This document shows, piece after piece, positions 13,354 to 56,174 of a stretch of DNA of 64,000 bases; within the stretch, counting starts at the first letter, position 1, and each line of letters opens with the position of its first letter. The stretch spans positions 62,001 to 126,000 of IMG/VR virus record IMGVR_UViG_3300035670_000008; one strand, written 5' to 3'. The position numbers and the translations under genes are program-made. Below the pieces are notes generated by a model. It saw only the letters and a program-made list of their open reading frames with translations. It had not been told where the DNA came from and searched no databases.

Positions 13354-13716
13354 ATGCCTAACTTTGCTCTTGGCACTGACCAAGGAACTCTGGAAAGCCA
13401 TCCACTATACGACTCCCCGTTTAGTTTAGAGGCTGGCGGGCCGCATAAGCTTACTTATAACGGCTTTGTCCGAGTTAACACAGGTATCTACGATAGAGAC
13501 GGTACTGGAGACTCAGCTCGGAACGCCTGGCATTATTATCTACAGAACTTAGACATCACAGTGAGCAAGTATGACTGCTCTGACGACCCAGTGGCGGGTT
13601 CTGTAGCTACGCGGGACGCCGATGGGGCCCTGCACGCGACTAACTTCCATGCGGGAGACTTCAGTTTTGGAGTGGATGGCATTAAAGGTATCTTTAGCGG
13701 TGGAGCCTTCGTCTAA
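13354..13716 (+). CDS. Hypothetical protein
   Basis: ORF coupled to next gene (TAATG). Confidence 0.6.
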   Translation: MPNFALGTDQGTLESHPLYDSPFSLEAGGPHKLTYNGFVRVNTGIYDRDGTGDSARNAWHYYLQNLDITVSKYDCSDDPVAGSVATRDADGALHATNFHAGDFSFGVDGIKGIFSGGAFV

Positions 13717-13979
13717 TGACTGAGTCTATTGCGGAGACGACTACAGCCGTCGGGCTCAAGTTGGCTATGCTAGGGGACTTTGATGACGACCCCTCAGCGG
13801 ATACGCTGCTGGAGTTTGGCGATAAGTATAATTTCAATATGAAAATGCTTGACCAAACAGTTAATCAAGCTCGTAACGCCTTTGAGAATATGGAACAGGT
13901 CGAACGCGCGGGCGTTCTTAAAGGAGTGTTATACGGTGGAAAGCTTGGGGTCTATGATATAGCTTTACCATCGGCATGA
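13716..13979 (+). CDS. Hypothetical protein
   Basis: Coupled ORF. Confidence 0.55.
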   Translation: MTESIAETTTAVGLKLAMLGDFDDDPSADTLLEFGDKYNFNMKMLDQTVNQARNAFENMEQVERAGVLKGVLYGGKLGVYDIALPSA

Positions 13980-14306
13980 GTCCATTAGTAGCTGCTTAAC
14001 CGAGTTATCCCGAGTCATGATTTGACTCATGGTTTCAAGCAGCCGGTTAATAATCTCAGCTTTGGATTCTTGTCTTAACTCCTCCTCCATCATTCGACAA
14101 CGCAGGCTCTGCTCGAGGGTTAGGTCGAACTCCTCCCCTATCAGCTTCTTGTTTTTAGCCAAGCTCAGGTAGAGATTGGTCTTGATGGACAGCTGCCTGG
14201 TGGCGTCCACCAGTAACTCTAATAGCTGCATCTTTTCTAGGTTTTCAGCAGCTTGTTTCATTTGAAGATATTGAAACTGCTGCTCCAAAGTTAACTGGGG
14301 TGACAT
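13965..14306 (-). CDS. nblA: Phycobilisome degradation protein NblA, two domains fused in tandem
   Basis: Repeat 1 LTLEQQF...RQLSIKTN; repeat 2 LTLEQSL...SQIMTRDNSVKQLL. Confidence 0.85.
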   Translation of the reverse strand: MSPQLTLEQQFQYLQMKQAAENLEKMQLLELLVDATRQLSIKTNLYLSLAKNKKLIGEEFDLTLEQSLRCRMMEEELRQESKAEIINRLLETMSQIMTRDNSVKQLLMDSCRW

Positions 14307-14417
14307 TCGGTAAAGCTCCTATTTGGTAGATACTAACAAGTTAGCTTATCCTGCCTTTTGCTTTTTTCCCCGTATTCTAGCTTACAGTGATAATAGTACT
14401 TTATTCTGCGCGTCCCA

Positions 14418-16943
14418 ATGCCTGACCAGATAACTAAGACCCAGGAGACTATACGTTATATTCATCGGTCTGACAACAACCCTCAAACCCTGCCCAGCCT
14501 GTCCACCGAGAACATAGACATCTACAAGGGTGAGGTTGTCGTCAACACCTCTAACGAGAGTCCTGCTCTTTTTATCCGTAGCGGCGAAACTGATAATGAG
14601 AGAGTTAGTGACCGGCTTGTTCGCATTGGCAACACGATTATCTCAGAGGAAGAGCCTTTTGTAGGCATAGATCAGGTAGACAAACGAGGGCTGCATTGGT
14701 ATAACCCAAGTTCTACCCTCCTACATATGTATGACGGCGCTGGTTGGGTAAGAGTAAACAGCGTGCCGGCTACTGAAGTCGTTGCTGGGGAAGCCCAGGT
14801 CGCCAAGTTTGATGATTTAATCCAAGCAACCAGCGACGCCAAGATGGTCTCTCCGCTGAAGCTGGAGCAGTGGAGAGACCACTACGGATTTGTGTCTAGG
14901 AAGAAGAATACCTTCCAGTTGTATGTTGACTTGCAGTATGGAGATGACTCTTTAGAGAACGACGGTAGCGACCCTTATCGTCCTTTTTTAACGATTGCCC
15001 GCGCAGCCATTGAAGTGGCCAGACGTAGCTACAACTATCCAGGCAGAGCTTACTACAAACAGCACACGATTTTCCTCTATCCAGGACAGCATTACGTAGA
15101 CAATCGGCGTGGGGTCAGCCGTTATATCTCTCTGCCTTCTTTGAGCGTCAATTCCACCGGCCCGGTTAACCCTCAGACGCTTAATCAGGTTGTTACGGAT
15201 GTAGACTTAACCACCCAAGTCATTACTTTAAGCGAGCGGGTAGAGTTAGACAGCCGACAAATCTGGTCGTTACGAGATGGAGAAATCGTCGGCTCCGCGA
15301 TTATCAGCAGTGATATTACTTTCGGCGACCAACTTCCGGTTCGTAATATCAAAGGTAGTTGGCTGCCGGGCGATCGAGTAGTTATCTCCGACCTTTATCT
15401 TTTGAATCCCCCAACCGGAGGGATTATTCTACCTCGGGGCTGCTCTGTGGTTGCTTTAGATCCAGATAAGACCGTTATTCGACCGAAGTATATCAGTAAC
15501 CAAGAGTCGCCCTTTGCCTCTATCTTTAAAGTTACCAATGGGTGCGCGTTGGACGGCTTGGTGTTCACAGACTCTAACTTAACTTCTACACATCAGCGCT
15601 GCTCAGCCGTAGAGTACGTTGCGAAAGAAGACTTGGTCAATCTGGACTACGGCTATTACCCTAAGCTTTACTATATCTTCGTCAACACTCAGCTGCCCGC
15701 CCTGGTTCAAAGCGGCTTGACTGCTTTGGAGTCAGAGCTAGCCAATAATGACCTAGGCTACTCAATCTCTATTGATAATTGCGTGGTGAAGTCTTACTAC
15801 GGCTTGAATGGTTTCGTGTTCGAGTACGGAGCGGTAAATGGTAATAACGAGGTTCTGCTGACCGGACTAAAGGTATACACCGAGCAGTTGGATAGCAACG
15901 CCTATGTAGACCCAGAGAAGCGAGAATACAAACCCGAAGCTAAAAACTACGCGGTTAAAGCCCAAGGTAACGTCATCGTTAAGCTGGCTAACAGTCATAT
16001 CAAAGGTGTTCCAGAAGCCCTAGTTTGTTTAGGCGGCGGGCAGCAATACATAACAGGTACTCACTTTAATGACGTGCCTACGTTAGCGGTCTGTAAAGGC
16101 TCACTACCTAGCAAGTTACTGAAAGAGAGCGGGGGTAAAGTCACTCAGATTGTCCCAGTGCTGCCCACACCTATAACTACAAAGAACGTATCTCTGGGGA
16201 CACTACGTAAGACGCTGAGCTTGAATGAGGACTACAAACTTTATCTTAATGACCTAACGTTGACCCCGGACAGCTACTCCTTAGTTAAGGATGAGTTTGT
16301 CTTTATCACCCAAGGGGGCTCTACTTATCAGGCTAAATACTCCGAGTATGGGGTAGATTACATTGACGGTGAGTATTGTGAGTACTTGCTACTTAACTCC
16401 ATTGATGTAAACACCATCACCGATAACCTCTCTGGTGTAGACGATGGCACATCCGTCTATATCAAACGGGTCGTAGACCGTCGGCAGCCCTCTAGCAAAC
16501 TTTACTGGTTCCGCATAGAGGATGTCCGGGCGACACCCCCAAGCGTGGGCATGATACTCAAATCGAGCACCAACGAAGAGCAGTTCAGGACGTATGTCGT
16601 CTCTGCTGTTACGGCTCTGGATTCGACTACCTACTTAGTGGCATTTATCTTAGGAGAGGAGCAAGACCTTCCCTTAACCGATGTGTACCCAGATATTAAT
16701 ACTTCTGTAATTAATACCAGCACCCGGAATAAGTTAGCTACGGAGTGGTTCCTGCGGCAACTAGGATACAGCGAGCAAGGAATAGTTGAGGCTCTATTAG
16801 AATCAGCTCAACCCAGAACCTTGCTTAGTCAACCAAGAGTCGAGTTCGTTGACTTCTCGTTGATTGATATTCGAGGAAGTATCATCAACAGCAGTAGCTA
16901 TGAGGTTGTATCTGCCTACGGTGGTGCAGTCAGACTAGAGTAA
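14418..16943 (+). CDS. Tail fibre/tailspike-like protein
   Basis: GEVVVN/YDGAGW fibre motifs, LYVD..GDD..G..PFLTI.RA, beta-helix-like region. Confidence 0.7.
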   Translation: MPDQITKTQETIRYIHRSDNNPQTLPSLSTENIDIYKGEVVVNTSNESPALFIRSGETDNERVSDRLVRIGNTIISEEEPFVGIDQVDKRGLHWYNPSSTLLHMYDGAGWVRVNSVPATEVVAGEAQVAKFDDLIQATSDAKMVSPLKLEQWRDHYGFVSRKKNTFQLYVDLQYGDDSLENDGSDPYRPFLTIARAAIEVARRSYNYPGRAYYKQHTIFLYPGQHYVDNRRGVSRYISLPSLSVNSTGPVNPQTLNQVVTDVDLTTQVITLSERVELDSRQIWSLRDGEIVGSAIISSDITFGDQLPVRNIKGSWLPGDRVVISDLYLLNPPTGGIILPRGCSVVALDPDKTVIRPKYISNQESPFASIFKVTNGCALDGLVFTDSNLTSTHQRCSAVEYVAKEDLVNLDYGYYPKLYYIFVNTQLPALVQSGLTALESELANNDLGYSISIDNCVVKSYYGLNGFVFEYGAVNGNNEVLLTGLKVYTEQLDSNAYVDPEKREYKPEAKNYAVKAQGNVIVKLANSHIKGVPEALVCLGGGQQYITGTHFNDVPTLAVCKGSLPSKLLKESGGKVTQIVPVLPTPITTKNVSLGTLRKTLSLNEDYKLYLNDLTLTPDSYSLVKDEFVFITQGGSTYQAKYSEYGVDYIDGEYCEYLLLNSIDVNTITDNLSGVDDGTSVYIKRVVDRRQPSSKLYWFRIEDVRATPPSVGMILKSSTNEEQFRTYVVSAVTALDSTTYLVAFILGEEQDLPLTDVYPDINTSVINTSTRNKLATEWFLRQLGYSEQGIVEALLESAQPRTLLSQPRVEFVDFSLIDIRGSIINSSSYEVVSAYGGAVRLE

Positions 16944-18232: not shown

Positions 18233-21200
18233 ATGGCTAATATCGATAACACCGTAGTAATTACTGGGCCGCTATCTCCGATAGATGATCGAGATACCTA
18301 TCCTACTCATCTCGCTAGGTATGGTAAAGGTGGTTTTTATCGAGCGGCTACGTTAGCCGAGCGAAATCTAATCCCTGATGACCGCCGAGAGCAGGGGTTA
18401 ACGGTATTAGTCACAGACGATTTGAACCCTACCTTCAACCGTGCTTATACCTTAGATGGCGGTATTAGTAATGAAGACTGGGTGGAGTGGGTTGTTACCC
18501 CTAACTACTTAGAAGACTGGAAGAAGAACGGCACCTTCCCTAACGACCTGGACATCTACTGTAATACGATTACAGCGTCCGGCGATAGCGTCTTCAATAA
18601 TATCCTGGTTTATAACTCCGTTCGGCTGGGTAAGATAGACAACCGCCTTCAAGTTGTACCGAGCGGGATTCAACTTTTTACTAATAACGTTGCCCGGCTA
18701 ACCGCTACAGAAGACGGTAAACTAGTCACATACTCTACCTACGTCCCAACCGAAGCCAAATCGTTGGTCACCAAAGACTTTGTAGAGCAGCTGATTGGCT
18801 CCGGCGGGGGCGGCGGGGGCTCAGATATTCCCAACACTCCTATTAACCTAACCCCAACCAACGGTACGAATAACCTCGGAACTGGGGATACAGCTATTAC
18901 CTTTACTGCTTCTGTCTACTTCAGCCCAATTGCCTCGGCAATGACAGCTAGCCAATGGAGATTCAGTGAATCAGCAGACTTTACCGTGCTACTTCATACC
19001 ACTGGAGACCGGGCTGGTACATCTACTAGCTATAGTTTAAGCACTCCTCTGACCGTCCTAGGCACCGGGAAGACGGTCTACTGGCAGGTACGGTACAAGG
19101 ACTCAACCAATGCTTATTCTAACTGGAGTAGCCCCACCACCTTTACAACGACGACAACTGACCCGGCTCCTAACCAACCAACAAACATCTCCCCAGTCAA
19201 CAACGCTACGGACGTAGGCGACCGGGGTAACCCAGTTACATTAACCGGCTCGACCTACTCCAGTGCCGTTAACTCTCCGATGACTGCGGCTCAGTGGCAG
19301 TTAACTACTACTACAGACGCTGGCTACGCTACTCCAGTTGTGTCTACTGGGGATATTGGCGGTACTGCTGTTAGCTATACAATTCCTAACCCCAACGCAG
19401 TACTGGGAGTTAACACCACCTACCGCTGGCGCATTCGCTACAAAGACAGCGCTGGGCAATACTCCGCTTGGTCTAGCTCCACCACCTTTACTACAGCCTC
19501 GTCCTTTACTCGCCTACCACCCTTTACCCCGATTAACGAACTGCCGGTTAATGGTTCAACGAACCAAGGGGCTAACGCGACGGCTATCACCTTAAAGGCG
19601 ACTGCCTACAATAGTCCCGAAAGCTCCCCAATGGCGGCTGGACAATGGCAGATTACTTCTACTGCTGACACCAACTTCAACAACGTCATCGTAGACACTG
19701 GGGACATTCTAGGAACTGGCATCGAACGGGTGATTAACAACCCTGCTTCAGTTCTTCAACCCAACACCGTCTATCGCTGGCGGGTACGGTACAAAGACTC
19801 TAATGGGTTGTACAGCGGCTGGAGTAGCGCCACAACCTTTACTACTGCCGGTAGCTTCGCATTGCTAGTAGCGCCCCAAACTCCTTCCAACGTCTCCCCA
19901 GCTAACCTAGCTACCAACTTAGGCTACAACCAAGCTGCTATCGTGCTGCAGGGCTCCCCCTATCAACACACTCGCAACATTGAAATGGCAGCCCGCCAAT
20001 TCCAGATTACATCGTCAGCTGACACCAGCTTTAACGATATTATCGTTAACACCAACGAAATCTCTGGGAACCAACTGACCTACGTGTTGAACGACCCCAG
20101 TCTGGTGCTAAGCACCTCCACCACTTACCGCTGGCGGGTTCGCTACAAGAGTTTGGAAGGGGTATGGTCTAACTGGAGCACCTCTACCCGGTTTACCACT
20201 GCTAACACGTTTGCTAATGACGTACCGGTTATCATTACCCAACCCACTAGTATTGAAGTTGCTGTTGGGAGTACCGCCACATTCTTTATCTCCGCGATGG
20301 GCACGAACTTAACTTATCAGTGGCGGAAGAACAACTCGAATATCACTGGGGCTACTGCTCCGTTGTATAGTTTCACTGCTCAAAGTGGCAGTCCGGGCGG
20401 CTACACCTGCGTAGTGTCCAACCCAGCTGGCAGTGTTACGTCTGACACAGCTCAACTAACCCTTCGGTTAGATGCACCTACTATCATCCAGCAGCCACAG
20501 GATTTAACCGTCCGCTCTGGCTCGACTGCAAGCTTTAGTGTTATTGCTACCGGCTCCACACCGCTGTCTTATCAATGGCGTAAGAACGGAGTCAACATCT
20601 CTGGCGCCACCAACGCTAGCTACAACATTCCCTTTGCTTCAGACGACGACGCTGGGGCTTACTCCGTTGTGATTAGCAACTCCGTCGGCTCCGTCACTAG
20701 CAGTAGCGCTACGCTAACTATCGCGGCTGTTGCTCCAACGATTACCAACCCGCCCCAAAGTCAAACGATTAACCAAGGCTCCCCGGCTACGTTCTCTGTG
20801 ACAGCCACTGGGACATCCCCCATGACTTACCAATGGCGGAAGGATGGTGTTAATATTTCCGGGGCTACTAACAACAGCTACGTTATCAGCTCAGCTGCCA
20901 CTACAAACGTAGGGGCTTACTCGGTAGTCGTGACTAACTCAGCAGGCAACGCGATTAGCTCTAGTGCCTCCTTGGTTGTTATTACTCCCCCAGTGATTGT
21001 GCAGCAACCAAGCGACACCACTTTAACCTTGGGGGCTACCGCTACGTTCTCTGTGTCTGCTACAGGAACAGGGCCATTCAGTTACCAATGGAAAAAGCGT
21101 GTTAACGGTGTCTCTACCAACATTAGCGGAGCTACAGCCAGCACCTACTCCATTGTTAACATCGGCTCCAGCGACGGGGCTCAGTACTCAGTCGATGTCT

Positions 21201-22483
21201 CTAACTCGGCAGGTACAGCGTCTAGCTCTAACGCAACGTTGACCGTTATTACTCCACTGCCGACTATTACCCAGCAGCCTCAGAGCATCTCGGTCACGAA
21301 CGGGCAGTTAGCTACGTTCTCCGTAGTTGCAGAGAGCCTAGCCCCACTAACCTACCAATGGCGTAGAAACGGCGTTAACATCAACGGCGCGACCAGCGCT
21401 AGCTACTCCACTACTGCTAACTCTTCTACAAATAACAACAGTAACTATTCCGTTGTTGTAACTAACGCTGGTGGCTCTATTACCAGTGCTGCAGCTACGT
21501 TAACTGTGAACGTTCCTCCTACAATTACTCGGCAGCCGGCCTCCACGACCTCTTATACCACTAGTCCGGTCACAATAGATGTTCAAGCAACGCCTTCTAC
21601 TTGTACCTATCAGTGGTATAAGAACGGTGCGCTTATGAGCGGCTCTACTCAATCTACCCTTAGTATGAGTGGGCAGCCAGTAGGTACTCACCAGTTCTAC
21701 TGTGAAGTAACAAACTCAGGGATTTCAGTTAACTCTAGCACTGCAACGGTTATCGTCGCTAATCCTACTCCAATTCCAGCGCCTACGATAGAACTCAACG
21801 GGCACACGGTTAATATCGATTCTTCGATTGGGATAGACATAGATACTGGTCTTCGGCTATCAAACGCTAGTTATTACGACACCCAAGCTGGGCGGACGGT
21901 AGACCCAAGGGCAGAGCATGTTACCTTCGTCTATGAAATCCGACGAAATGGTGTTTTAGTAGAAGATTCCTGGCTCGGTAAAGCGGTAGGCGACAAGCTT
22001 CTAATAAATGCTATCTTTGGGCCCGGCAGTCATACAATCCAGTTCACCGCTCGTCAAACACCTAAATACCCCTATAGCACCTTTGACGACAAGTTCGAGA
22101 TAGACCAAACCCCTGTTACTACTACTTTTACTGTGGTTAACGCAGCTGTCCCTACTCCTCAGTTATTGTTTGTACCTACATACGACGGGGTGTTTTTAGG
22201 TTACTACGTTGGTTGGACGGGCACTCAGCATTTATATATCTCACAAGCGAGTACGACAGTAACCGGGGAAAGAAACAACGTAAATCCTACTATGAGCGCT
22301 AGTGACGCGGCTATCATCGATGCAGCCACTACCTTACCAGCTGACCAGAATCCTACTGGTAAGCACTGGGTAACAGGGACTAACACCACCTATAACTTCG
22401 ACACTGGGTTGACGGACACAGAAACGCCTTCTTTACTCTATAAATCCCGTGCTGTTGCTAAAATGACTCCTAACATAGCTTAA
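18233..22483 (+). CDS. Large virion protein with 4 FN3-like and ~6 Ig-like repeats
   Basis: Repeated Y.WRVRYK.S...S.WS..T.FTT and I.QQP...ATFSV.A.G..P..YQW.K.G..I.GAT. Confidence 0.85.
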   Translation: MANIDNTVVITGPLSPIDDRDTYPTHLARYGKGGFYRAATLAERNLIPDDRREQGLTVLVTDDLNPTFNRAYTLDGGISNEDWVEWVVTPNYLEDWKKNGTFPNDLDIYCNTITASGDSVFNNILVYNSVRLGKIDNRLQVVPSGIQLFTNNVARLTATEDGKLVTYSTYVPTEAKSLVTKDFVEQLIGSGGGGGGSDIPNTPINLTPTNGTNNLGTGDTAITFTASVYFSPIASAMTASQWRFSESADFTVLLHTTGDRAGTSTSYSLSTPLTVLGTGKTVYWQVRYKDSTNAYSNWSSPTTFTTTTTDPAPNQPTNISPVNNATDVGDRGNPVTLTGSTYSSAVNSPMTAAQWQLTTTTDAGYATPVVSTGDIGGTAVSYTIPNPNAVLGVNTTYRWRIRYKDSAGQYSAWSSSTTFTTASSFTRLPPFTPINELPVNGSTNQGANATAITLKATAYNSPESSPMAAGQWQITSTADTNFNNVIVDTGDILGTGIERVINNPASVLQPNTVYRWRVRYKDSNGLYSGWSSATTFTTAGSFALLVAPQTPSNVSPANLATNLGYNQAAIVLQGSPYQHTRNIEMAARQFQITSSADTSFNDIIVNTNEISGNQLTYVLNDPSLVLSTSTTYRWRVRYKSLEGVWSNWSTSTRFTTANTFANDVPVIITQPTSIEVAVGSTATFFISAMGTNLTYQWRKNNSNITGATAPLYSFTAQSGSPGGYTCVVSNPAGSVTSDTAQLTLRLDAPTIIQQPQDLTVRSGSTASFSVIATGSTPLSYQWRKNGVNISGATNASYNIPFASDDDAGAYSVVISNSVGSVTSSSATLTIAAVAPTITNPPQSQTINQGSPATFSVTATGTSPMTYQWRKDGVNISGATNNSYVISSAATTNVGAYSVVVTNSAGNAISSSASLVVITPPVIVQQPSDTTLTLGATATFSVSATGTGPFSYQWKKRVNGVSTNISGATASTYSIVNIGSSDGAQYSVDVSNSAGTASSSNATLTVITPLPTITQQPQSISVTNGQLATFSVVAESLAPLTYQWRRNGVNINGATSASYSTTANSSTNNNSNYSVVVTNAGGSITSAAATLTVNVPPTITRQPASTTSYTTSPVTIDVQATPSTCTYQWYKNGALMSGSTQSTLSMSGQPVGTHQFYCEVTNSGISVNSSTATVIVANPTPIPAPTIELNGHTVNIDSSIGIDIDTGLRLSNASYYDTQAGRTVDPRAEHVTFVYEIRRNGVLVEDSWLGKAVGDKLLINAIFGPGSHTIQFTARQTPKYPYSTFDDKFEIDQTPVTTTFTVVNAAVPTPQLLFVPTYDGVFLGYYVGWTGTQHLYISQASTTVTGERNNVNPTMSASDAAIIDAATTLPADQNPTGKHWVTGTNTTYNFDTGLTDTETPSLLYKSRAVAKMTPNIA

Positions 22484-22490
22484 TATTACT

Positions 22491-22919
22491 ATGAAGTATT
22501 TACTACTGTCCAAGATAGACCGTGTTGTAGAAGGCTCCGTAGTTGAGAGTTCTCTACCTGAGATTGAGGGGCTTCAAGTCGAGTTTTATAACGAGAGTGA
22601 ATGGCCTACGGATAATCCGCTTGCTTACTGCACTGCGGAAACCAAGGCTAAAATCACTACTGAACAGCCCGGCGTGGTTGAAGTATTAACGAAGAAGGAG
22701 TTTCTAGATCGGAGAGACCTTGAGTTCTCTCTTCGTTACGAGAAGCTGTCGGCCACAGCTAAACATAATCGTAGTATCTGTTATCAAACAGAGGCTGACC
22801 CCCTCTTCTTCAAGTACCAACGTGGGGACGCAACTAAAGAAGAGTGGTTAGCAAAGGTAGAAGAAATTAAAGCCCGTTTTCCTCTATCTGAGGACGAGCC
22901 TACTTCAAGCAGCTTATAA
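22491..22919 (+). CDS. Tail fibre assembly chaperone-like protein
   Basis: C-terminal ADPLFFKYQRG...WLAKVEEIKARFP; directly after fibre genes. Confidence 0.7.
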   Translation: MKYLLLSKIDRVVEGSVVESSLPEIEGLQVEFYNESEWPTDNPLAYCTAETKAKITTEQPGVVEVLTKKEFLDRRDLEFSLRYEKLSATAKHNRSICYQTEADPLFFKYQRGDATKEEWLAKVEEIKARFPLSEDEPTSSSL

Positions 22920-23907
22920 TCCTTTCTGTAACTTCTGGAACTGCGGTGAACTCATCCCGCAGTTTTTTGATGGCTTCTCGTTCTATCTGCTTTACTCGTC
23001 CAGCGCATAACCCGTAACACTTAGAGACTTCCTCACAGGTCTGACGTTTGTAGCCACCTACTCCATTCAAACGCATCACAATCTCTTTATCTCGGTCGTT
23101 CAAGCAGCTTAGTAAATCGACCAGGATGGTGTCTACGTTATCCCGAACGATGTCCACTTCTAAGTCAATACTATCGTCGGGTACGTACTCGATAAACTCT
23201 AGGAGAGAGCCGCTCATACCCTCTACGGTCATATTCAGACTGGCAGGGCGCTTCAAGTAGTTAGTAATCGTTCTGATGTAATCCGAGGTCAGGCCAGTCT
23301 CTAAACAGACCTCAGCCATGGTGGCTGGACGACCTCGCTCAGCTAAGTATTGTTTATTAATCTTACGTATGAGTCTTAGCTTATCCGTAACGTGAACGGG
23401 CAATCGAATAAGCCGTCCGGTCTTGCTAATCCCTTTGTTAATAGCTTCTTTAATCCAGTAGCTGACGTAGGTAGAGAGCTTCACACCATAGACGGGGTTG
23501 TACTTCTCTATTCCTTTGATTAACCCGGTGTTTCCTTCCTGTACCAAGTCGTAGATATTAAGGTTGACGTTGTTATATTTCTTTGCAATAGACACAACCA
23601 ATCTTAGGTTGCTGTTAATCATTATTTCTTTAGCTTCTAGTCCTGTCTCGTAGGTAACGGCGACCTCTTCTGGGTCTAGCTCTTCTAGAGTGATGTAGTC
23701 TTCCAATGGGATGTTAAGCTTTCTTCGGCGCTCTTCGTAGGCCATCATCGCTTGAATCTGCCGACCGTAGAGGTTTTCTTCGTCCCTGGTTAACAGCCGA
23801 TACCGACCGATTTCACATAGATAGTAGGTAAAACTATCTTTCTTAGGGTGGAGCTTCTTCTTGTTAGCTGAGACACCGAGCTGCTGAGGTTCCGTAGAGC
23901 TATCCAT
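22900..23907 (-). CDS. Sigma70-family factor, cyanobacterial group 2/RpoD-like
   Basis: YLCEIGRYRLLT, SNLRLVVSIAKKY, DLVQEG..GL, STY..YWI, RLIRLPVH, region 4 HTH. Confidence 0.92.
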   Translation of the reverse strand: MDSSTEPQQLGVSANKKKLHPKKDSFTYYLCEIGRYRLLTRDEENLYGRQIQAMMAYEERRRKLNIPLEDYITLEELDPEEVAVTYETGLEAKEIMINSNLRLVVSIAKKYNNVNLNIYDLVQEGNTGLIKGIEKYNPVYGVKLSTYVSYWIKEAINKGISKTGRLIRLPVHVTDKLRLIRKINKQYLAERGRPATMAEVCLETGLTSDYIRTITNYLKRPASLNMTVEGMSGSLLEFIEYVPDDSIDLEVDIVRDNVDTILVDLLSCLNDRDKEIVMRLNGVGGYKRQTCEEVSKCYGLCAGRVKQIEREAIKKLRDEFTAVPEVTERIISCLK

Positions 23908-41065: not shown

Positions 41066-44000
41066 CTATTTGCGGTTGGCTTTCAGCCACGCGAAGTAGT
41101 CGTGGTCTACGAAGCCTTGGCACCCGGTCAGCCAGTTAATTACCCGAGGGTCAGAGCAATCTAAGAAGACGTCCTCGATGCGCTCGAAACGAGACAGCAT
41201 CACATAGAGGGCGGCTACTCGCTGTAACGCCTGCTCTTCGCCTAAGCGGTCTTCGCTAATCGAAATGATGCCAGGGCCTTTAATGGTTAACCCTTGGCAG
41301 CTATTAATCGTAGTCGCGAAATCTGCGTGGAGGGGTAGCTGGATGAACTTACCGCTCAGCGTGCCATCGGAAAAGTGCTTGCCCTCGAACTCATGGCTTT
41401 CAATACGAACGAGCCGATGTCCGAAGTCAACGATGACGTGGTCGTTGCCTAGTGACTTAATCTTGCCCCGACTACCATTAGCGGCCAGCAAGGTCTTGTT
41501 ACCACTTACAAGCTCGTATTTATTGTTACGTAGCTTGACAGGCATGTCAATGGCCAACGTCAAATTGGCAGGGATGGGTCGGAAGTCCCGGAGCCAATTA
41601 TCGTTGGTAGCGCCTTTCCGAATGACTAGACCGTTGTAGGTCTTCTTGGTGGTGACCATCGCCTGGGTATAACGCTCGTTCACTTCAATAACGCGACGGT
41701 TATTGTAGAAGATATGAACAGCGTTCTCAGGCGGGGTGACTACGCCGTTGATGCAGTCAGCAAAACGCTGTGCAATAACCCCAGTAATCATCCCAGTCTC
41801 ACGTAGGATGTCCAGGGCTTCCTGGTAAGCAGGGTCACCTTTCTGACGCACGCCGGTGTTTAGCTCAACGATGCTGAACGGACGGGTGGTTCCGTTGAAA
41901 CCATTGATTAGGCTGCCTTGGTTAGCTTTACAGCCGTTGATGAAGACATCTTGGTAGAACTTCACGGCTTTGTTATCGCTAACCGGCAGCTGACCACCGT
42001 CACCTACGAGCAGGATTTGGGCGAGTGGGTTCAGGCGTTTGATAATGTTGAAGACAACAAACAACACCCGTCCATCCACCATGGATACCTCGTCGATAAC
42101 TACGCGCAAGCGCTGACCGGTCTTGCAGGTCAAGCTTTGCTTAACGTAGTTATTCGTCAGAGACTTCATCACCATCGACTGAGCCCACTGCCAATCGGTG
42201 GTGCCAGGGGTGCGCTTCTCGCTGAAGTCAATACCCAAACCGAAACCACTGTTAAGCGTTCCTAGCGCACCGTAAGCGCCTTCCTGTAGGCTACCGCCGA
42301 GGTTCATCACGGAGATACCCGTAGAACCAAAGACGACGACCTTGTCACCAGCGGCTGCCCAACGGTGGATGGTTTCGGCAGTGATGAAGGTCTTGCCGGT
42401 ACCAGCCTTACCGGTCAAGAAGATGTTGTCACCCTGCTCCACCAGGGCTAAGAACTTTTTTTGACAGCTGGTTAGGTTGTCGATTTCGGCTAGCTCGATA
42501 GGTAAACCGCAGGTGGGTTCAGCGGCAGGAGCTTCGGAGATAGTAGGGATAGAAGGGAGAGTTTGCATAGTAGCCTCAGGGTTAGGAGTTTCTATGCTAT
42601 CTGCTTTTTTCCCTGCTTTCTCTTTACTTTCTTGTAGGTCAGTAATAACCGTTGTGTCAGCTACGCGAGCAATGTTTGCTTTGGAGCCTTTGGAGTGCCC
42701 GTCCCAAATGACGATACTCTTATGGCAACCATCGTGCATGACAGCATCACGTTGCGTATAGCTACCATTTACGCAGATAGTAGGGTAGCCTACGTTATTA
42801 CGACAACGATTTGCGTAGTAAACGGTTACTTCGCAGCCACGTCCTAGCAGATACTGCTGTACAGCAAGGTCAATACCTGTAGCATCACCAACTCGGAATG
42901 TAGCACCGGCTTGGATGTAAGCATCGATCTCTACCTTTGCTTTATCAGGTAGTTCTTTGATCGAACGGCTGCCGGAGACAACTACAACCGCACGCTTTGG
43001 CTCAACTGCTCCATCTATTTCCATTAGTTCGCCAAATATCCAGCAGTCTTTCTCTTCAGACCAATCGTAGAAAAGCTTGGTTACTTCGCCAGTGCTAGCT
43101 AGATAAAGCCAAGAAGCTTCAAACAAATTTACGATGTGCTGGCTGGGGCGGTAGCTAGGTAGTGAGTAATTAACTGCATAGACTACATCCCGAATGGCGT
43201 TCAAGAAGTCGCAGGCCTGTACGTTGTACAACCAAGGATGTTCTATGAAGGCACCTTTAGCTCCATGCTCAATGACGAAGCAGTAAGTGTCAGGGAACAG
43301 GTCGAAGTCTCCAGACCACGGCTGGCTCTGTTTACCGTCATACCAATCCTTGGCTTCTTGTAGTGCCTCGTTGAAACTATCAACAGCCCCTGTATTGCTG
43401 ATATCTGGGTAGCCGTAAAAGTAATCTACTAACCCAGTTTCCCAAAGGTAGACTAGATAATCTTCCTTAGTTAGGCTACATTCGCGGCTGGAGTTGCCAT
43501 AGGAGAATACCAATGTGTTAGCGAAGATATTATCCAGCTCGTCCATTGAGATAATGCCGTTGTGTAGCAGGTCGCCCATGGTACGTTTACCTTCAACGAA
43601 ACTATTAATATACAGCTCGTCGATATAAGGTTTGATACTTTCAACAAAAGCATCAGCAACCTTAATCCGGTTGGCGGTGGGCTTAACCTCTGTAGCTACC
43701 ACATCAATGGTAGCCCCGGAGGGCTCTACAGAAGCAGGGGCCTCTGTAGATTCAGCGGTGGGTTCGGCGTCTACAACGGCAGCGAAGCCGCCATCAGACG
43801 GAGGAGTTGGCTCCTTGGGAGTAGCAGGTACAGACCCACTACCAGAGTCGTCAGAGCCTTCGTCTTCAGGCTTCTCGTCGTTAGATGCCGAACCGTTCGT
43901 CGGCTCAACTCCCAACTGTACAGCCAGAGCAGCTAGCACACGCTCGGCAGCAGCGTCGCCAAACTCAGCCCGCACTTCATCAACGATGGAGCGGACTTTC

Positions 44001-47000
44001 TGTTGGCGAGCGGTGCGTTCGGCTTTAGCGCGCTCTTCTGCTTTAACTTGCTCAGCGATGGCAACCAGCATAGCTACCGTGGCGTCACTCTCAGCGGCGG
44101 CTTCGAGGACATCGACGATAGGCACAGCAGTTACTTCTGCTTCCTCAGCGACCTGGGTAACCACAGGCGTAGGAGCCACGATGGGTGCAGGTGCAGGTGC
44201 AGGTGCAGGTGCAGGTGCAACGGGAGCTGGGGCGGTAGGAGCTGGGTCGATGACCTGCGTAGGGACAGGCGCGCTGCTAGGCTCGAACTTATCAGAAGAC
44301 AGCACTATATCAGGGTCTTCATAGTCGTCGAAGGCGGCTGAGCCTGCAAGGTCTAGCTCTTCTTCATCCCAGCGTCCATCATCCATGCCCTCGAATGGGT
44401 CTTCGTGAGTCAACCCATTGTCGATGACCAACTCGGCTGCTGGTTCATCGTTAGCGGTTGGGGCGGAGGCTTCCGCAGTATTCCAAGAGAGTGCATTGGC
44501 AATCTCCTGAGCAGTCTGGGTAGTCGGGCCGACCTCCATGATTGGTTTAATTTCCATTTCTCCTTCGACCTCTGGAGTAGAATGACGGAGCTCTAGTTTA
44601 TAGCGGAAGTAATCCATGGCGGGACGAGCTCCTGTGTCATCCATGAATTCATAACCGGTGCCAGGTAGGTATTTACATACGTCGCCCAGAACAGATTTCT
44701 GGAACATACGACGTAGTACCCATAGTACATGGGACTCGGTATAGACTTCCTCAGGGATTGTTACACCCGCAACTGGATTACCCAAGGCATACCAGTGGAA
44801 CAACTGACGAGTAACCTGTAGGTGACAGATTACTTTGTTTTCGTCCCAGTCGTTCTCGCCATTGAGGTAGCCTTTGAAGTAACCCACCCATTTGCCGCGG
44901 GTCATTTCAAACTGAGCGAAGGAATTATATTTGATAAATCCTTCTAACCCAACGCTGGCGTCAGCTTCGGTACCGTAGAGCATACCTTTCTCCCATGCTT
45001 TAACTTCGGCTAACAGGTTAAAGCACTCGGCAATCTCCATACCGGCAGTACCGTTACAGCCCATCGCTTCAACAGCCGCGATGAACTCTTCGATGCTCTT
45101 CACATCGTTGTAGCGGAACATCGTGACGTAGTTAGGGCGGGGTACTTTAACACCCAGACCTGTATCTACGAATTCAGGACGGCTGACGGCTTGGACGTAG
45201 TCTACCCACATACGCCAGGTCGGTTTGGTGTAGGCACCGAGAATGGTTTCATAAATCTCAGCTACGATAGCCACGATTTGAAACGCATTATCACTGGCGG
45301 CCCACTTGAGGGAGTCGGGAATCTCAACACCACACTTCTTGAGAGCAGTGACGATGTTGATTACACCTTCGCCGAGCTGATAGATACCGTAGGACACACC
45401 CACCATGGTGGTGAACACTTCGCGGGCGCGAATGTTGGTGTCCGCGTAGCTATCAACCTCAACCTCTTTACCTTTGATGGTGACCTTAATAGGATTGATA
45501 GCACCTTGTAAAGCACCATCTTTCGGGTCAACTTTCACGAAGGAGGAGAGGTTCTCGACGATGCGTAGGCGACTCCAGCCGTTCTTGGGCATCATGTAGT
45601 CACCCCAGTAGCATTCCTTGCGGATGAGGGTAGCCCAAGGAGATTCTCCAGGACGTTGACCCACAGCACCGGCACGGAAGGCAACAGCAGACTCAGCCGT
45701 GGTAACTAGACTGAGTAGCATTTGCAGGGTGTGCCCACATGTCCAGGGCAGGATAACGCCGTAGGTGCCGTCGCCGTCATTATCCCCAGCGGTCATCAAG
45801 TTGTGAGCCAAGGGGCTCATCAACCGGGTAGCGCCGTAGATAACGTCGAGCTGTACGACGGGCTGATTGTTCTCATCCAGCAGAGGCTTACGGTCTTTGT
45901 AGACAATGTAAGTCGGGTCGCTGGGCGCGTAGTAGAACGATTCGATAGCCTTACGGGTGTAGGGCAGAATCGTCACCAAACCAATCGAGCCGTCGGGCAT
46001 AGGCGAACGAGTCTCATGGTTGATGATGGGGGTCGGATACGCAGCTAACCCAAGACGAAGAGCAGTCTCGAACGTGGGGCAGTCCCGGTCAAGGCTATAC
46101 TTAGTCATTTCAGAGGTGAACTGACCAGTAGTAGCATCGAACACAGGGCGCTCGTAGCCACGCACGTACTGTTTCATCAAGTCGTACTGCATACCACCCT
46201 CTACTACTAAGAACATCCAGGTGGGGATGTTGGGTAGCGACAGTGCTTTACCACCAATCATCCGGTCACCACCGATATTCTTGGCGTTGCTGGAAGATTC
46301 GGTGAGGGCACGTAGTTTACCGCGCAGACGGTTGACATCGATGGCGCTCGGTAACTGACCAGCTAGGAGCGTAATCAGATACTGGTAGAAGAAGATGCCA
46401 GATGCTGTCTCTAGGCACTCCTCACCACTCTTCAACGAGTTGAGGTTGAAGAGCATAGGAGTGTAGATATCGATGTGGCGCACGATGTTGGAATCATCGT
46501 ACTCGTCTTCCCACTCATCGTAGTCACAGTCGTAGCTATCGTAGTCCCACTCATAATCCTCGTAGTCGGGAGCCTTCGTTTTGATATGGTCGAAGGTTAA
46601 CTTACGAGGAGTAGAGGTTACAACACGAATCACTACGTTCCGTAGGGCGTGGCAGACCTTACCAAACAGGGCGTCGTCGTCTGGATTGCTGAGGTCTACA
46701 TCAACTAGCAACTCACGGACGCGAGCCATACCTTCTTCATTAGGCACAGCTTCCCAAGATTTAACACCACGGCTAGTAACCTCTTGCCAGTTGGCGAGGG
46801 TGATGGTTTCTAGCAAGGTGGAGTCGTAGTCCATCGAGCCGTCGTACATGGCGCAGAGCAGCTTCGCACGGTAGGGAGATTCCAACGCGCGCACGGCTTG
46901 TCCTTCCATCACTTCACGGATAGCCTTGTTAGGCATCAAGCGATAGTTAGAACGAAGCGCAGCGCCTAGCTGATGAGAATCACCAGCGGCTTCTTCTACA

Positions 47001-50000
47001 GTGCTGCTTTCAAACAACACGACGTCGTAGATGGGGCAGTCGCAATCAGCACGACCAGCCAGCACCCAACCACGCTGCTGCATGACGGAGACGTTTCCGT
47101 CTCCGTTCAGGTGGAACCAGAAGATGTTGGCACGTTCTTCCGCGCGGCTACCTTTGTGGTTTGCAGGGTCGAGGAGGTCTACATCACTCAACACTACGGT
47201 ACGAGTGAAGACTTTGTCTCCCACGATGACCTTGCGGTCGACCACTGGGCCGATGTTGGCAGAGGTGACGTCATACATTAGCCCTTTGGGTTTGCCGTTG
47301 TCGTCCTTGGCATCCACAGCTGCTAGGTACAGTTCGAGTAGTTTGTTACCATACTCGCCGTACTCTAGGTCTGCCCAGGTCACAGTCAGCTGCTGCCCGA
47401 AGAACTCAGCAAACGCCTTCTGTAGCGCATCGTAAGCACCTGAGTTGATACCCACCGGGTCTTCAATGAGATAGTCTAAGTGGCGGCGGCCATCATACTT
47501 CTCATTTAGGTCCATACCCATCTCCCGCAGCGCCAAGAACCGGGGGTCTTGACAGTCTTTGTTGAAGACCAACGTATGGGAGATATAGGGGATATTACAG
47601 TGGGTCGTATCCATCTTCAGAACGTCCTGAGGTAACAACAGCTCAGCAACGCGCGGGCTGATGTTTGGATTATCGTTGTTGAAGATAGACTCGGCGTGCA
47701 TAGACGCGACCATACCTTTGACGACGGAGCTACGAAGCTTACCCCAGTCTTCGGCTTTGGTTACAGCCCACTCGACCACGAACTCAACTGCTTTCGTGCC
47801 AGTCTCTAGCGTGCGGGTGGTATAGGTACGCACCCACTCTAGGTAGCCAGTGAAGTCACGGGTCTGCTTGGCAGCACGAAGGTAGGGCTGATTATCCTTG
47901 AGCTTGGCACCGGTGTTGATTTGAGCCAACACATCGCCCTTGCGGACCAACTGCAGCTCGGTCGGGCGGTAGTAGGTATAGGTGATACCATACTCAACCT
48001 CTGTGGTCTTGGTGTGTTCACACCCCATGAGCACGGTGCCCATGTCAATTACCAGAGGATTTGCCCGATCGAACTTGCTGGAGCGGTAGGACATCTTCTT
48101 GGTAACGAAGCCCCGAGGACGGGAGTATTTGCTACCCAAATGCCACGCCTGACCTGCAATGCCTGTCATGGTCATACCGAGGATGACCTTCTGTAAGGTA
48201 CCTTCCAAGGGTAGGACTTGACCGACTGCCATTGAGCCACCTTTAACCTGATAGAAATCAGGCGGCATGGTACTCATAGCGATGGTGTTAGGCTCGTTGC
48301 CGTAGCCACCCTCTTTGATGAGTCGCTCCAACTCGGGCCGACCCTCGAAGTCAATCACGCAGCCGGAGGGCACAGAGGTAGGAGCTCGTAGGTCAAGACG
48401 CTTCGAGCCCTTCGCCGTCTTGGTGTTCAAGTTGGCGAACATCCAAGCGAGGTCACCACCAAAGCCGTTAGCCTCAGCAACAGCGCGAAGTTCTTCATAC
48501 CACGTGGGCGCCAGGTTTTTCAGGCGACCAAGGTCAACGTGGCAGATGTTGCCGCTACGCGCGGTGCCTTTGTTGAAGGAGAACCCCATGCTGAGCTCAC
48601 CGGTAATCCGGGTGATGAGCATCTGCATGATTTCGGAATCCTTCACCTGACCACGCAGACGGAAGGAGTGATACTCCTTGGTCAGACGGCCAGCGCCAGC
48701 ACCAGCGAAGTCTTTGAATTTGACCTTGCCGTTCTCTACTACCAAGGGCTCAGGATAGTAGACCACCATGTTGTTGTCTTTATCCCGATTCACCATCACA
48801 CCCACGATGCTATAGCTATTAGCTTCAGCATGTAGGGTGGGGCCAGACATGTTCATCGTCCCATCGCTAGTGACAGGGAAGAACTTGTCAGTTTTGGTGT
48901 GGAATGCAGCCAAGTTCGCAGACACGTTCCGTGTGGTAGCAGAGGCAACCAACTGACCGCTGAGTAGGGCGACGTAGCCGTAGTAGAACAGCCGCATGAA
49001 GCCACCGAAGGAATCACAACCCCGGATGGAGTGGATAAGCTTCTGGGACTTCTTGGTCTCAGGGTCACGGTAGTTTTCCCAAACTACTTCGATGACGCCC
49101 TTGAACATACGGTCACGGCGGCCATCAACAACACCCAGTTCAGTCATGCGAAAGTCGAGGCTCTCCTCTAGAACAATCGCATTGTTCTCCCACTTGATGA
49201 ACTGATCAGCGTAGTCCTCACCGATGTAGCTACGAATGATTCGGACCAGTGCCTCAAAATGCACGGGCTTCCATTCGTAACCGGATAAGGAACCAAGGTT
49301 GCCAGCCGGGTCTTTGCCCATACAGGCAGCCAAATACGCATGACACGCGTAGGCCGCAGGACGTAGCCCGTGATTCAACAACGTAGTACCATCTTGCAGG
49401 ACGGTGTTGTTGTTAATCCAGGTGTGGAAGTTGTCCTTGGTATAGGCCTTCCAATCTACGGCTACCAACTCGTCAGTCGTGATTTTCTGAATCGAGTTAT
49501 AGTAGGCGCGCAGTTCAGCCACGCGATCAAGGATGGCTTCTTTGGGGGTGCGGGCGTCAATTGTTACCTCAGGCTCGGTAGCCACAGGTGGGATGACTTC
49601 GATAGGCGCAGGCGCGGGAGCGGCAGGGGGTGGTGTGGTTTCCTGTTCCATAGGCACGGGTTTGCCGGGTAACAAACCACCATGCTCCTCGAAGTACTTG
49701 CAGGTGCGAGTACGTTCAAGGTCGCTCATATCCAGGCGAGGGTCGCCATGGTCCATACGCGGGCTGAATGCGTTGACCGGATACATACCTGTGTAAGGCT
49801 TCTTGTACCGGAGGATGCGCTCACCGTAGACGGTCTCAACCACGGCTTCCAGAGCGGTGGTATCAAAATGGTTGATACCCTTCTGGTCAAACACCCAATC
49901 AGCGGCCTGTAGCAGCGTGATGTTGTTGCAATACATCCGCTGAGAGGTGTGCTGTTGGTCAACACCAGGGGTAAGGTCACCGACCACAGTGTTGTCCTTA

Positions 50001-53000
50001 GCTACAGTCATGCGGCGGAGTTTGCCGCCGAAGACATAGCCAGAGTCCCCTTTGTCCCGGTATTCCCCAAAGCCATGAATAGCGTGAACCTCAGCGATAG
50101 CCACGAACCAGTAGCGTTTGCCTGCCTCTGGCATAGAGGCGATAATACCTTTGGAGTTGATGGTGTTGTAGTCACCAACTGCTTTGGCTCCATTGGTACC
50201 ATTTAGCAACAACTCCTTGAGCGTGCCACGTTGCAAAGTCGCTTCGGTGGAGGCAGCACTATCCACAAAGGAGGTACAACGTACCTTACCTTCCTCTTTG
50301 TTCAGCTGGGCATACACCAACTGAACTTGAACGTTGCGGATGTGCTGGTTACGATACCAGCCGCTGGTACCATAGAAGCCGCCAGCGCAGGTGGGAGCAC
50401 CTTTCTGGTAGCTACGAGCCGCAAAGAACAAGACGGGCTCGACCTCACCCATCATATTACCGAGGGAGCCGAAGTTCAGCTTAGCTTCTTCAGGTGCTAA
50501 GTCTGGGGCTCCCAATTTCAAGAAGGAGTTCTCGTTAGTAAACTGTTCCCGCACAGGCAGGTTCAGATTACTTTCTATTATTTCCCCGTCTGCGTTACGT
50601 CGCATACCAACGAGGTAGACAGCGTAACCCAGGGTGTACTCGTTCATACCGGCGGCAGCATTAGCCAGCTCGGCCACAAACTCGCAACCGGGGAAGCATT
50701 CGATTAAAGAGTTGAGCATATTCCCTCCTTTACTATGCTCTCCGTTTGCTTTTTTCCCCGTATTCGTGGAACACGGTGGGGAAGCAGGTGTGGTACCTGC
50801 CGCAACACCCGATTGTTCGGGAACCCCATGGCTGAAGGCCACGTAGTCGGCCACTATACCAGATTTGGTCTTGCCGAGCGTAGCTTTAGCTTCAAGCAGA
50901 TACTGCTTAAAGCCGGCGTTGATAGCCCGGTCAGCCTCCAAATCCATGGCCCAACGAGCGAAGGACTCAACTACTACCTCTTCTTCTCGTTTTTCCTGTT
51001 TGTAGCTTGCAATCCAAGCTTTAGGAATATTACGGAAGTACTTGCGGGCGAAGCCATTCCCTTTAAGGCTGAGGTAGCCATGGAAGTGGAGGTAGTGACC
51101 AAACTCATGAAAGAGAGTCTTGGTCATCTCACGGGCGTTTCCTTCACCCCGCTTCACGATATAAATCGTGTTGGGCGCGGCAAACGAACCGTTGACCTCT
51201 TCGTGGCCGGTGTAGCGGCGGGCCATGGCGTAATCCATTTCATCGTCACGGTCAGCGACGATGATATTAACGCTAAAGCTGTCTTCTAACCAGTTACGCC
51301 ACTGGTAGAAGCGTTCCATACCAGCGGGGTTGTTATCAATCTTAGCTACGTCAATCTTATGGACAGCACAAATGCCAGGCTCTTTAGTTGTGGGGGCCTC
51401 GAACTCTTTAGCCATCTTGTAGATAACAGCTTCATCTACTTGACGAATCCGTTGCTTTTGACGTGCGCAGGCGAGTTCTGGTGTTCCTTGCAGCCAATGA
51501 ACCTCCCAATGACCTTTGCCTGCTTCGGTAATACGTCGGCGCCATTTAGAGTTAGAGTTACAGCCGTCGTAAACGATTTGCATTCCTAGCTTATTAGCGG
51601 CGGCAAACTGCTCTTGGATGTAAGTCCAAACTACTTCGATATCACCCTCTACTAAATCGGTGCCATAGATTTCTTTCTTGGCTGTGTCCCAATCGATGTA
51701 GTAGTAATCTTTGAAGTTTTCTTTAGCGTAGGTAGACTTACCTAACCCAGGCAACCCAACTAACATTATGTGGGTCTTAGGTTTAATACCTTGGCATAAA
51801 ACAATAGCTTCATCATGTGCAGCTACGTTAGCTAAATGCTCAGGCAGCGCCTTGCCTTTACCAATAGTACGCACATGCCGTGCCACATAATCATTAACCC
51901 GGCCAGCCTTAGGAGACACACGCACCGGAAAAGCTTTCATTTTGAAAGCCAACCCAGCATACATCTTGTCGCACTGCATCGTGTAGCGCATCCAATTGTA
52001 TGTTGTAAACTTATCCCGGTCGGTTTCATACTTGAAGGTATGGCTTAAGCAGAATGCCCGCACACCACCAGGGGTTTCATACACCTTAAACAAGTAGTCT
52101 GGGTTGTTCTTACACCAGTCGTGTAGTAAAGCATAGGCCTGACAGCGGTGGTTAATGGTAATACACTCCTCGGTATAGTGCCCATCGTCAGGGATATCCC
52201 AATCAAGCATCATTGTGTTTGATTCCCAGAAATAAATCTGCTTCTCTAGAGACAAGTCTTCAAGACGAAGAGCCATCTCTAGTTCACCAGCAGCACCGTA
52301 CTCGCTACGGGCGGCGGTGAGTACTTCTTGGGTAGAGCTGGCGATGTATGGGAGCTCGAATCCCGTGGCGCCCAACTGCCACGCAAACAGCTCGTCCATA
52401 ACCTCAGCCGCCTGTTCGTAGGCAGCCTGGGCCAGCATCAGCTGGTGATAATCCTCCTTCCACTCTTCGAGTGGGTCATACTTGGACTCATCAAAGTCCT
52501 CCTCGTATTCGTCGTCATACTCTTTTTCTTCCTCGTCGTCATACCCGTACAGGGTATCGTCGTAGAAGGCCAGCTTGGGCTCCTGGCGTTTGATGCCACC
52601 ATAGAGGTGGTTGAGGGCGCTGTGGCCATCAGCGCGCCGGTTGTATTTACCCTCCGCGATTAAGCGGCGGTAGTGAATAGACAAAGGCAGCTCTTCCTCA
52701 GTCCGCTGGGTGCGGAACTTGCCAGCTTTGGCTACGGGTGCCTCTGCCCCGGTAGCTAACTGGAACCGGGAGTTTCCTCGCCGGGTAGCGATTGACTTCA
52801 TCGCCCGCGTAACAGGCATAACGGGCAGCTGCCGGGATTTGGGTGGGGTCACCACTTTATAAGTGGTAATTTTGACTACCTGACCACCGCGATGCGCGTA
52901 GATGCGCAACCACTCGGAGTAGCCAAGCCGGTCGGCTTTCCAGACCGATTTAATTTTGCGCTGCTTACGTGCAGCAGCGCGTTGTTGGGTTGTCAGAGGA

Positions 53001-53785: not shown

Positions 53786-54085
53786 AGGTTTAATCTCCTA
53801 CTTGACTGAGTTTGGTTTGGATTGAAACAACGTCCATGCTTTTAAGCGGAGCTAAGGACTGAACCGATTGGATTTATTTAATGTCTTGTCCAACTCAGAC
53901 CTGCCCAAGCAAAAACCAACGCGGCTGTGCGCCTTAGCAGACATCAGGTCGGCTTGCGCCGCGCCATTGGTATCTACGTATCGGTTGTCTTGGGTAATAA
54001 AAAAACCCCAGGTATAAAACCTGGGGCGGAGCTAACAGAACCAACTCTTGTTAGGAGTGGGTCTGCTAGCTCCAAAGAAGTGAAA

Positions 54086-55036
54086 TTAGACTTGGGTTAG
54101 GTCGTAACCCGGGTCGTTGTCCACCGGGCGGTCCGGGATGTTGAATACCGTATCCCCCGAAGGGGCGGCATCCACAACACCGCCGACACCAGAAGTGGTG
54201 GTAGTAACCGTAGTGACCGGAGGAGCGGTGGGCGCCACAGGTTTAATATTCCATACCTCCGGGCGGTACCCGATTTCGACCAACACTTCCCGTATCCGCG
54301 TGAAGTCCTCGGGCTTGACATCCGTTGGAAGGTTGCAAGCCTTCTTGATAATCACCAACTTATCCACGACAGATGCGTTGATGTCCGGGTAGCGCTCCAA
54401 CACTTTCGTGCGGGCGTTCCATTCCGGGGTAGCTTGCATACCTTTGTCCTTGGTAGACTTCGTCGACTTCGTCGACTTCGTCGACTGGGTATTGGAGGAG
54501 GTATTGGAGGAGGTATTGGAGGAGGTATTGGAGGAGGTATTGGAGGAGGTGGTCTTCTTAGGTGGGGCTTGACTTGGTTCTAACACCAAGTTGAACTTAC
54601 CTTGTTGGTAAGCCTCCATAATTTCCTTAGTGGATTTACCATCCAGGAAGGTTTCCCATACTACGTCCATCTGCTCCCGCAATGCTTTGGCCTCTTTGGC
54701 CTCAGCTTCCAGCTTTTCACACTGGATGGCGAAACCCGCCGACCGCTCGATCGCGGTCTTGGTCCGCTGCTTCCACGCAACTTCATTGTCGCGTTCCTCC
54801 TTATTTACCTCTGTCAAGGTTTCCAAGTTTTTCGCTATTGCCTCCGCTGTCACTACCTTTTCAGGTGTGTTATCTGTGGCTACGGTTGGGGCCACCTTAC
54901 AATACTGCGAAGGCAAGCCCCGCTTGCAAGAAGGACAACCGCAGCCACCCACCGGAGCCGCCTTGGGAGCAGCAGGGGCAGCGGGGGCAGCTTTAGGGGC
55001 GCGAGAGATTTGAAGACCTAAGAAATTGAAAGGCAT
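54086..55036 (-). CDS. Hypothetical protein with SSNT and STK tandem repeats
   Basis: ATG at 55036 follows a leader motif shared with the 59973 gene; CGCPSC; 12-bp and 9-bp repeats at ~54455-54550. Confidence 0.75.
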   Translation of the reverse strand: MPFNFLGLQISRAPKAAPAAPAAPKAAPVGGCGCPSCKRGLPSQYCKVAPTVATDNTPEKVVTAEAIAKNLETLTEVNKEERDNEVAWKQRTKTAIERSAGFAIQCEKLEAEAKEAKALREQMDVVWETFLDGKSTKEIMEAYQQGKFNLVLEPSQAPPKKTTSSNTSSNTSSNTSSNTSSNTQSTKSTKSTKSTKDKGMQATPEWNARTKVLERYPDINASVVDKLVIIKKACNLPTDVKPEDFTRIREVLVEIGYRPEVWNIKPVAPTAPPVTTVTTTTSGVGGVVDAAPSGDTVFNIPDRPVDNDPGYDLTQV

Positions 55037-56099: not shown

Positions 56100-56174
56100 A
56101 GTAAACCCTAGTCCGGGGAAAAGAAGAACCGGCTGTCTAGGGTATAAAAATACCCTCCGAAGAGGGTATTATAG

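Follow-up and report, generated by a model that had tools for sequence, protein, structure and literature searches.

A cyanophage gene that joins NblA1-type and NblA2-type domains in a single polypeptide

The closest described counterpart of the gene analyzed here is the NblA1/NblA2 pair (ssl0452/ssl0453) of Synechocystis sp. PCC 6803, a heterodimeric adaptor that marks the light-harvesting antenna, the phycobilisome, for Clp-dependent degradation. In this cyanobacterium, NblA1 and NblA2 are encoded by two separate, adjacent and co-transcribed genes of 62 and 60 aa, which are activated by NtcA and are both required for bleaching. The two proteins are reported to function only as an NblA1/NblA2 heterodimer, which is essential and is co-degraded by Clp (Baier et al. 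2014, reference 76 of PMC7865187). Cyanophages also carry genes of this family as host-derived auxiliary genes, including Ma-LMM01 of Microcystis, PaV-LD of Planktothrix and marine T7-like cyanophages such as S-TIP37. The NblAs of these phages are single domains that are predicted to form homodimers and are presumed, and in S-TIP37 shown, to direct phycobilisome degradation during infection (PMC12695635, PMC11477984). Canonical NblAs of solved structure (PDB 2q8v and 2qdo; 3cs5; 1OJH of Nostoc) are homodimers of one chain of about 55-65 aa that share the same helix-loop-helix element.

The gene described here lies in a 64,000-nt stretch of DNA, the window, which corresponds to bases 62001-126000 of a 216,563-bp virus record rated 96% complete. 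A first-pass annotation, made from the sequence alone, proposed that positions 13965-14376 contain two diverged NblA domains in one 113-aa chain preceded by a phage-type "class II" promoter motif, and that the product is a pre-assembled pseudo-heterodimer for rapid antenna destruction. The observation is confirmed by the present analysis, although the designation of the motif as a promoter remains an interpretation. The features of the locus, in window coordinates, are as follows.

13965..14306 (-), tandem nblA ORF, 113 aa plus a TAA stop, a single-chain NblA1-NblA2 fusion with an ATG start
14151..14297 (-), N-terminal NblA domain, residues 4-52, NblA1 type (positions 76151-76297 of the virus record)
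14127..14150 (-), inter-domain linker, residues 53-60, the most variable part of the family in length and sequence
13983..14126 (-), C-terminal NblA domain, residues 61-108, NblA2 type (positions 75983-76126 of the virus record)
14316..14320 (-), Shine-Dalgarno sequence AGGAG, with 9 nt to the ATG
14359..14376 (-), the "class II motif" AATACGGGGAAAAAAGCA, a purine-rich repeated upstream element whose core ends 52 nt before the ATG
14374..14379 (-), -10-like hexamer TAGAAT, of putative function, directly 5' of the ACGGGG core
14390..14418 (-), alternative sigma-70-like promoter candidate, TTGGGA-17-TATTAT, overlapping the start of the divergent tail-fibre gene

The Pfam NblA model (PF04485) scores 68.9 bits on the whole protein, with two matched stretches. 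Scanned apart, residues 1-56 give 43.7 bits (profile positions 1-49 of 50) and residues 57-113 give 37.4 bits (profile positions 1-48 of 50), against a gathering cut-off of 25. A six-frame scan of the whole virus record finds these same two hits in one open frame and no other NblA. BLASTP finds no alignment between the two halves, and the gene is therefore not a recent internal duplication. In searches against solved structures by sequence, the matches are weak, the C-half being related to 2q8v/2qdo at E values of 0.007-0.013 and the N-half to 3cs5 at E 0.5. The strict NCBIfam model NF045916 (PhycobilmeDegNblA), with a cut-off of 100 bits, scores 23.9 bits on the whole protein and 17.5 and 15.8 bits on the halves, so that the protein is not an equivalog of the canonical single NblA by this model.

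The two halves correspond to the two partners of the Synechocystis system, in the order of the nblA1-nblA2 operon. NblA1 of PCC 6803 aligns best to the N-half (43% identity, 41.2 bits, against 26.2 bits for the C-half), and NblA2 aligns best to the C-half (39% identity, 44.7 bits, against 27.7 bits for the N-half). A profile of the tandem family was used to search 401 genomes sampled across the cyanobacteria. None contained an intact fused ORF, but ten contained an N-type gene followed 12-90 nt later by a C-type gene on the same strand, among them Synechocystis sp. PCC 6803, Synechocystis sp. LKSZ1 and PCC 7339, Snowella, Rippkaea orientalis PCC 8801 and Crocosphaera. In PCC 6803, the first gene is "NblA homolog 1", BAA17955. 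Profiles made from the tandem halves separate these host pairs cleanly: first genes score 72-85 bits with the N profile and 26-33 bits with the C profile, and second genes score 58-68 bits with the C profile and 37-44 bits with the N profile. Ordinary single NblAs are not separated in this way. In a maximum-likelihood tree of 88 domains, 11 tandem C-halves and 7 NblA2 sequences form a clade with support 99/96, within which ten of the C-halves form their own clade (96/93). All 14 N-halves and all 8 NblA1 sequences form an exclusive set with an SH-aLRT of 95-96, but the bootstrap of this set is only 13 in the careful run, a limit of the 58 alignment columns that these domains provide. Some of the host genes are misannotated in GenBank and RefSeq, which hides the nblA1-nblA2 pair: NblA2 orthologues of Synechocystis sp. 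LKSZ1 and Snowella are labelled "photosystem I reaction center subunit X" and one NblA1 orthologue is labelled "subunit XII" (loci L070:1298-1474 (-), L068:1492-1668 (-) and L069:1489-1674 (+)).

The fusion is not unique to this phage. A word-based search found only two relatives, at 56-57% identity, whereas an exhaustive HMMER search found 17 hits, of which twelve are 106-125 aa long and align across both domains at 30-40% identity. At least 12 clusters of such fusions exist when clustered at 50% identity, all in metagenomic contigs, and the four contexts examined are phage-like. The source databases give these proteins no name or call them "hypothetical protein". Four contigs, namely the window and the related contigs L003/L004, L005 and L009/L010, share synteny that comprises a tail fibre, a 409-aa gene, a giant Ig-repeat protein, a sigma factor, ThyA, an integrase and RecA, and the orthologues of 111-115 aa in the three other phage contigs sit at the same syntenic place. 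Two other contexts look phage-like in different ways: L007 is a 93-kb contig with ThyA, DHFR, RuvC, RNR and HU, and L011 carries HU, PhoH and a sigma factor. No match was found in deposited phage genomes by megablast of 8 kb or by tblastn of the protein, and scans of IMG/VR with the family alignment and with three other tandem members found nothing beyond the window's own record. In the literature that could be searched, no tandem, fused or two-domain NblA was found, and a recent survey of viral NblAs describes only dimers of single-domain proteins. The statement in the first-pass annotation that known cyanophage nblA genes are single-domain fits what is published, although this phage is one member of a small undescribed family rather than a singleton.

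The possibility that the two-domain ORF is an artefact, arising from an assembly or sequencing error or from a recent mutation that removed the stop codon of the first of two ordinary adjacent nblA genes, with two separate proteins still made, for example, through internal translation initiation, was considered. Cellular relatives are always two genes only 12-90 nt apart, such that a single change could merge them, and one apparent tandem, in the metagenome-assembled genome G003 (loci L044, L063 and L066, with a reported open frame of 141 aa), proved to be two genes separated by stops. A full-length hit with one TAA in genome G221 is likewise an nblA1-nblA2 gene pair of Snowella. However, the fused frame is intact in independent assemblies from different samples (JGI, NCBI, ENA, Logan), across orthologues at 32-57% identity and in about 12 clusters at 50% identity, all 106-125 aa and aligned end to end. 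In addition, there is no Met or Shine-Dalgarno sequence at the start of the second domain in the tandem protein P0001, whose linker reads KNKKLIGEEFD, and the short C-terminal tail of NblA1 has been replaced by a linker. This explanation is largely refuted by conservation and is very unlikely.

Structure prediction with AlphaFold2 on the 14-member alignment gives helices 7-20, 25-52, 64-77 and 82-111, with a mean pLDDT of 90.7 and a pTM of 0.81, consistent with two helix-loop-helix units placed confidently against each other. The model has no long helix between residues 53 and 63, and pLDDT dips to 84 in residues 51-60, where the family alignment has its gaps and lowest conservation. When the halves were folded as separate chains, they were predicted to bind each other with an ipSAE of 0.64, compared with 0.00 for the best of three controls; that mark was reached by 51 of 78 solved complexes and 2 of 108 mismatched pairs. 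The runs agree in at least 90% of contacts, and the partner pLDDT is at least 79. The best-defined contacts (28-85, 32-89, 35-92 and 39-96) join equivalent positions of the two long helices, which means parallel packing about a pseudo-twofold axis and brings the end of helix 2 close to the start of the next domain, so that the short linker suffices. This result may partly reflect the model's memory of solved NblA dimers, and it shows likeness rather than binding. Fold searches of the model did not retrieve NblA and returned only generic helical matches (Foldseek against the PDB, E above 0.7; VIA-align, Z of 7.1 or lower), which neither support nor contradict membership in the family. The double match to the NblA model and the predicted four-helix unit were the two computational outcomes anticipated for a tandem NblA, and the pseudo-heterodimer interpretation of the first-pass annotation is supported, and is strengthened by the NblA1 and NblA2 types of the halves, whereas rapid antenna destruction is inference only.

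The motif upstream of the gene is a genuine repeated element. ACGGGGAAAARAGCR, with up to one mismatch, occurs 5 times in the window, all on the minus strand, against 0.04 expected from shuffles. A profile of the element finds 10 copies with E below 1e-4 in the 216-kb genome, all on the minus strand and upstream of ORFs, and most lie in intergenic DNA 30-55 nt before a start codon that has a Shine-Dalgarno sequence. The downstream genes have no known function. A perfect copy at 50747..50761 lies inside a 4239-aa ORF (41066..53785, minus strand) and is followed by a Shine-Dalgarno sequence and an ATG at about 50716 that is in frame with the giant ORF, which suggests an internal start or an internal transcript giving a shorter C-terminal product. 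The exact profile does not hit the related phage loci; only a relaxed, purine-rich version is conserved upstream of nblA in L003 and L005, and related phages also keep it upstream of a neighbouring gene.

Whether this element is a promoter is unproven. A -10-like hexamer (TAGAAT at nblA, and GATAAT, TAGAAA, GATAAC or AATAAA in other copies) sits at a fixed place immediately 5' of the core in most copies in an ungapped line-up, and the phage encodes its own sigma-70-family factor (22900..23907, minus strand; regions 1.2, 2, 3 and 4; phrog_351, E 4e-57), five genes from nblA and conserved at the same place in the related contigs, which could read a non-canonical promoter. Alternatively, the element could be a conserved 5'-leader or RNA-level element, such as a purine-rich translational enhancer or a processing site, or the binding site of a phage regulator, with transcription starting at the sigma-70-like TTGGGA-17-TATTAT further upstream. 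In favor of this alternative, the motif has no -35 partner, lies a rather constant 30-55 nt before start codons and is strongly purine-rich (GGGGAAAAAAGCAGAAGGAAGG), as leaders can be, and the -10 part of the sigma-70-like site is partly conserved in L003 and L005. That site, however, matches 9 of 12 consensus positions, and the scan gave no more sites than shuffles give. The alternative is somewhat less likely than not but remains a substantial possibility. A perfect NtcA-type box, GTAN8TAC, also overlaps the motif at 14385..14372 (minus strand), with TAAGCT 23 nt downstream, where the NtcA-activated arrangement has the box about 22 nt upstream of a -10 box. Such boxes are not enriched in the genome (70 against 65 +/- 9) and the box is absent upstream of the orthologues in L003 and L005; it was considered as regulation inherited from the host but is probably chance. 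An Rfam scan of 13000-15000 found nothing meaningful.

The nblA ORF sits divergently next to a tail-fibre gene (841 aa, phrog_529) and is convergent with an 87-aa ORF (13716..13979, plus strand), with which it overlaps by 15 nt at the 3' ends (13965..13979); the same convergent overlap, of 4 nt, is kept in the related phages, and no terminator-like site lies between the two ORFs. The tail-fibre module includes a 1416-aa protein (18233..22483, plus strand) built of internal repeats of about 350 nt and about 260 nt, whose orthologues carry many Ig-like (I-set/Ig_3) domains and differ in length among related phages (1416-1868 aa), and which is a likely host-recognition or adhesion protein. A second repeated intergenic element, AGCGGTTGTCTAGGGCAATAAAAAACCC, has 7 copies in 53980..59489 at 67-100% identity to the reference copy and may be another promoter or terminator class of this phage. 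Two short tandem repeats, five consecutive copies of the 12-nt unit GGTATTGGAGGA (54476..54550) and a run of about 25 AGA triplets (55995..56081), each lie within or at the edge of a small minus-strand ORF.

The likely host is a Synechocystis-like member of the Chroococcales, but the evidence consists of hints rather than proof. An IS605-family TnpB inside the phage (10895..12103, minus strand; OrfB_IS605 plus Cas12f-like TNB domains) is 84% identical to one of Synechocystis sp. LKSZ1, while the next named relatives are 71% identical or lower. A related phage contig, L010, has a different TnpB plus a resolvase near ThyA, and mobile elements evidently move between these phages and their hosts. 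Among the genomes sampled, the NblA1/NblA2 pair is confined to Synechocystis, Snowella, Rippkaea and Crocosphaera-type Chroococcales. The GC content of the window is 45-54%, about 50% overall.

Taken together, these data are best explained by a single polypeptide made by fusing an NblA1-type domain to an NblA2-type domain, a reading to which a probability of about 0.7 is assigned. The two-domain composition, the NblA1 and NblA2 types and the operon order are established by sequence, whereas the fold of each half and the packing of the long helices into a ready-made four-helix "heterodimer" at fixed 1:1 stoichiometry, joined by a linker of 8 to 11 residues, are predictions. The remainder is inferred, including expression, binding to phycobiliprotein and ClpC, and phycobilisome degradation. 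In this view, an nblA1-nblA2 operon was captured from a host and fused by loss of the stop codon and the short spacer, and during infection the protein would bridge phycocyanin or phycobilisome rods to the ClpC-ClpP protease, as cellular and other viral NblAs do, dismantling the antenna and releasing amino acids. The gene would also have been moved away from the NtcA nitrogen-starvation control of the host and placed behind an upstream element shared with at least 9 other phage genes, such that its expression would follow the phage programme rather than the nutrient state of the host.

An altered function is less likely but should be considered. The fused protein could be a decoy that occupies ClpC or the NblA docking site on phycocyanin and so blocks the host's own NblA1/NblA2, keeping photosynthesis running, or an adaptor retargeted to other host proteins. 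The C-half evolves much faster than the N-half (45% against 69% identity between close orthologues) and falls below the Pfam cut-off in several distant family members, and the second domain might therefore have shifted function. The viral NblA studied in the oceans also directed cleavage of non-phycobilisome proteins (PMC12695635). Many cyanophages carry genes that sustain rather than dismantle photosynthesis, such as psbA-type genes. On the other hand, family-specific motifs of both partners are retained (LTLEQQF and IKTN in the N-half, LLETM..RDN.IK in the C-half), characterized phage NblAs promote phycobilisome degradation, and a decoy would not obviously need both partner domains kept over this much divergence. 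A broader reading, also unlikely on present evidence but not excluded, is that the fusion is a phage-specific innovation with changed behavior compared with the cellular heterodimer, which might, for example, escape co-degradation or host control, act on other targets or act as a decoy against the host's own chlorosis programme, and which would be expressed as part of a phage regulon defined by the ACGGGGAAAARAGC element and read by the phage's own sigma factor.

In comparison with the systems described above, the phage gene encodes a natural covalent hetero-tandem rather than two separate proteins or a single-domain homodimer, which is of clear interest for work on phycobilisome turnover and on cyanophage auxiliary genes. 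Because the family carries no informative name in the source databases and NblA2 orthologues are mislabelled, such genes are easily missed. The fusion is a ready single-chain reagent of about 13 kDa that could serve structural work on the still unresolved NblA-phycobilisome-ClpC complex and inducible antenna removal in Synechocystis, and the upstream element and the phage sigma factor give a testable handle on the gene regulation of this phage. The gene extends phage nblA beyond single-domain homodimers and points to a little-known group of large (about 216 kb) freshwater-type cyanophages that probably infect Synechocystis or Snowella-like hosts. Evolution has welded NblA1 to NblA2 in the operon order and kept the weld through deep divergence, which is independent natural evidence that the NblA1/NblA2 heterodimer is the functional unit.
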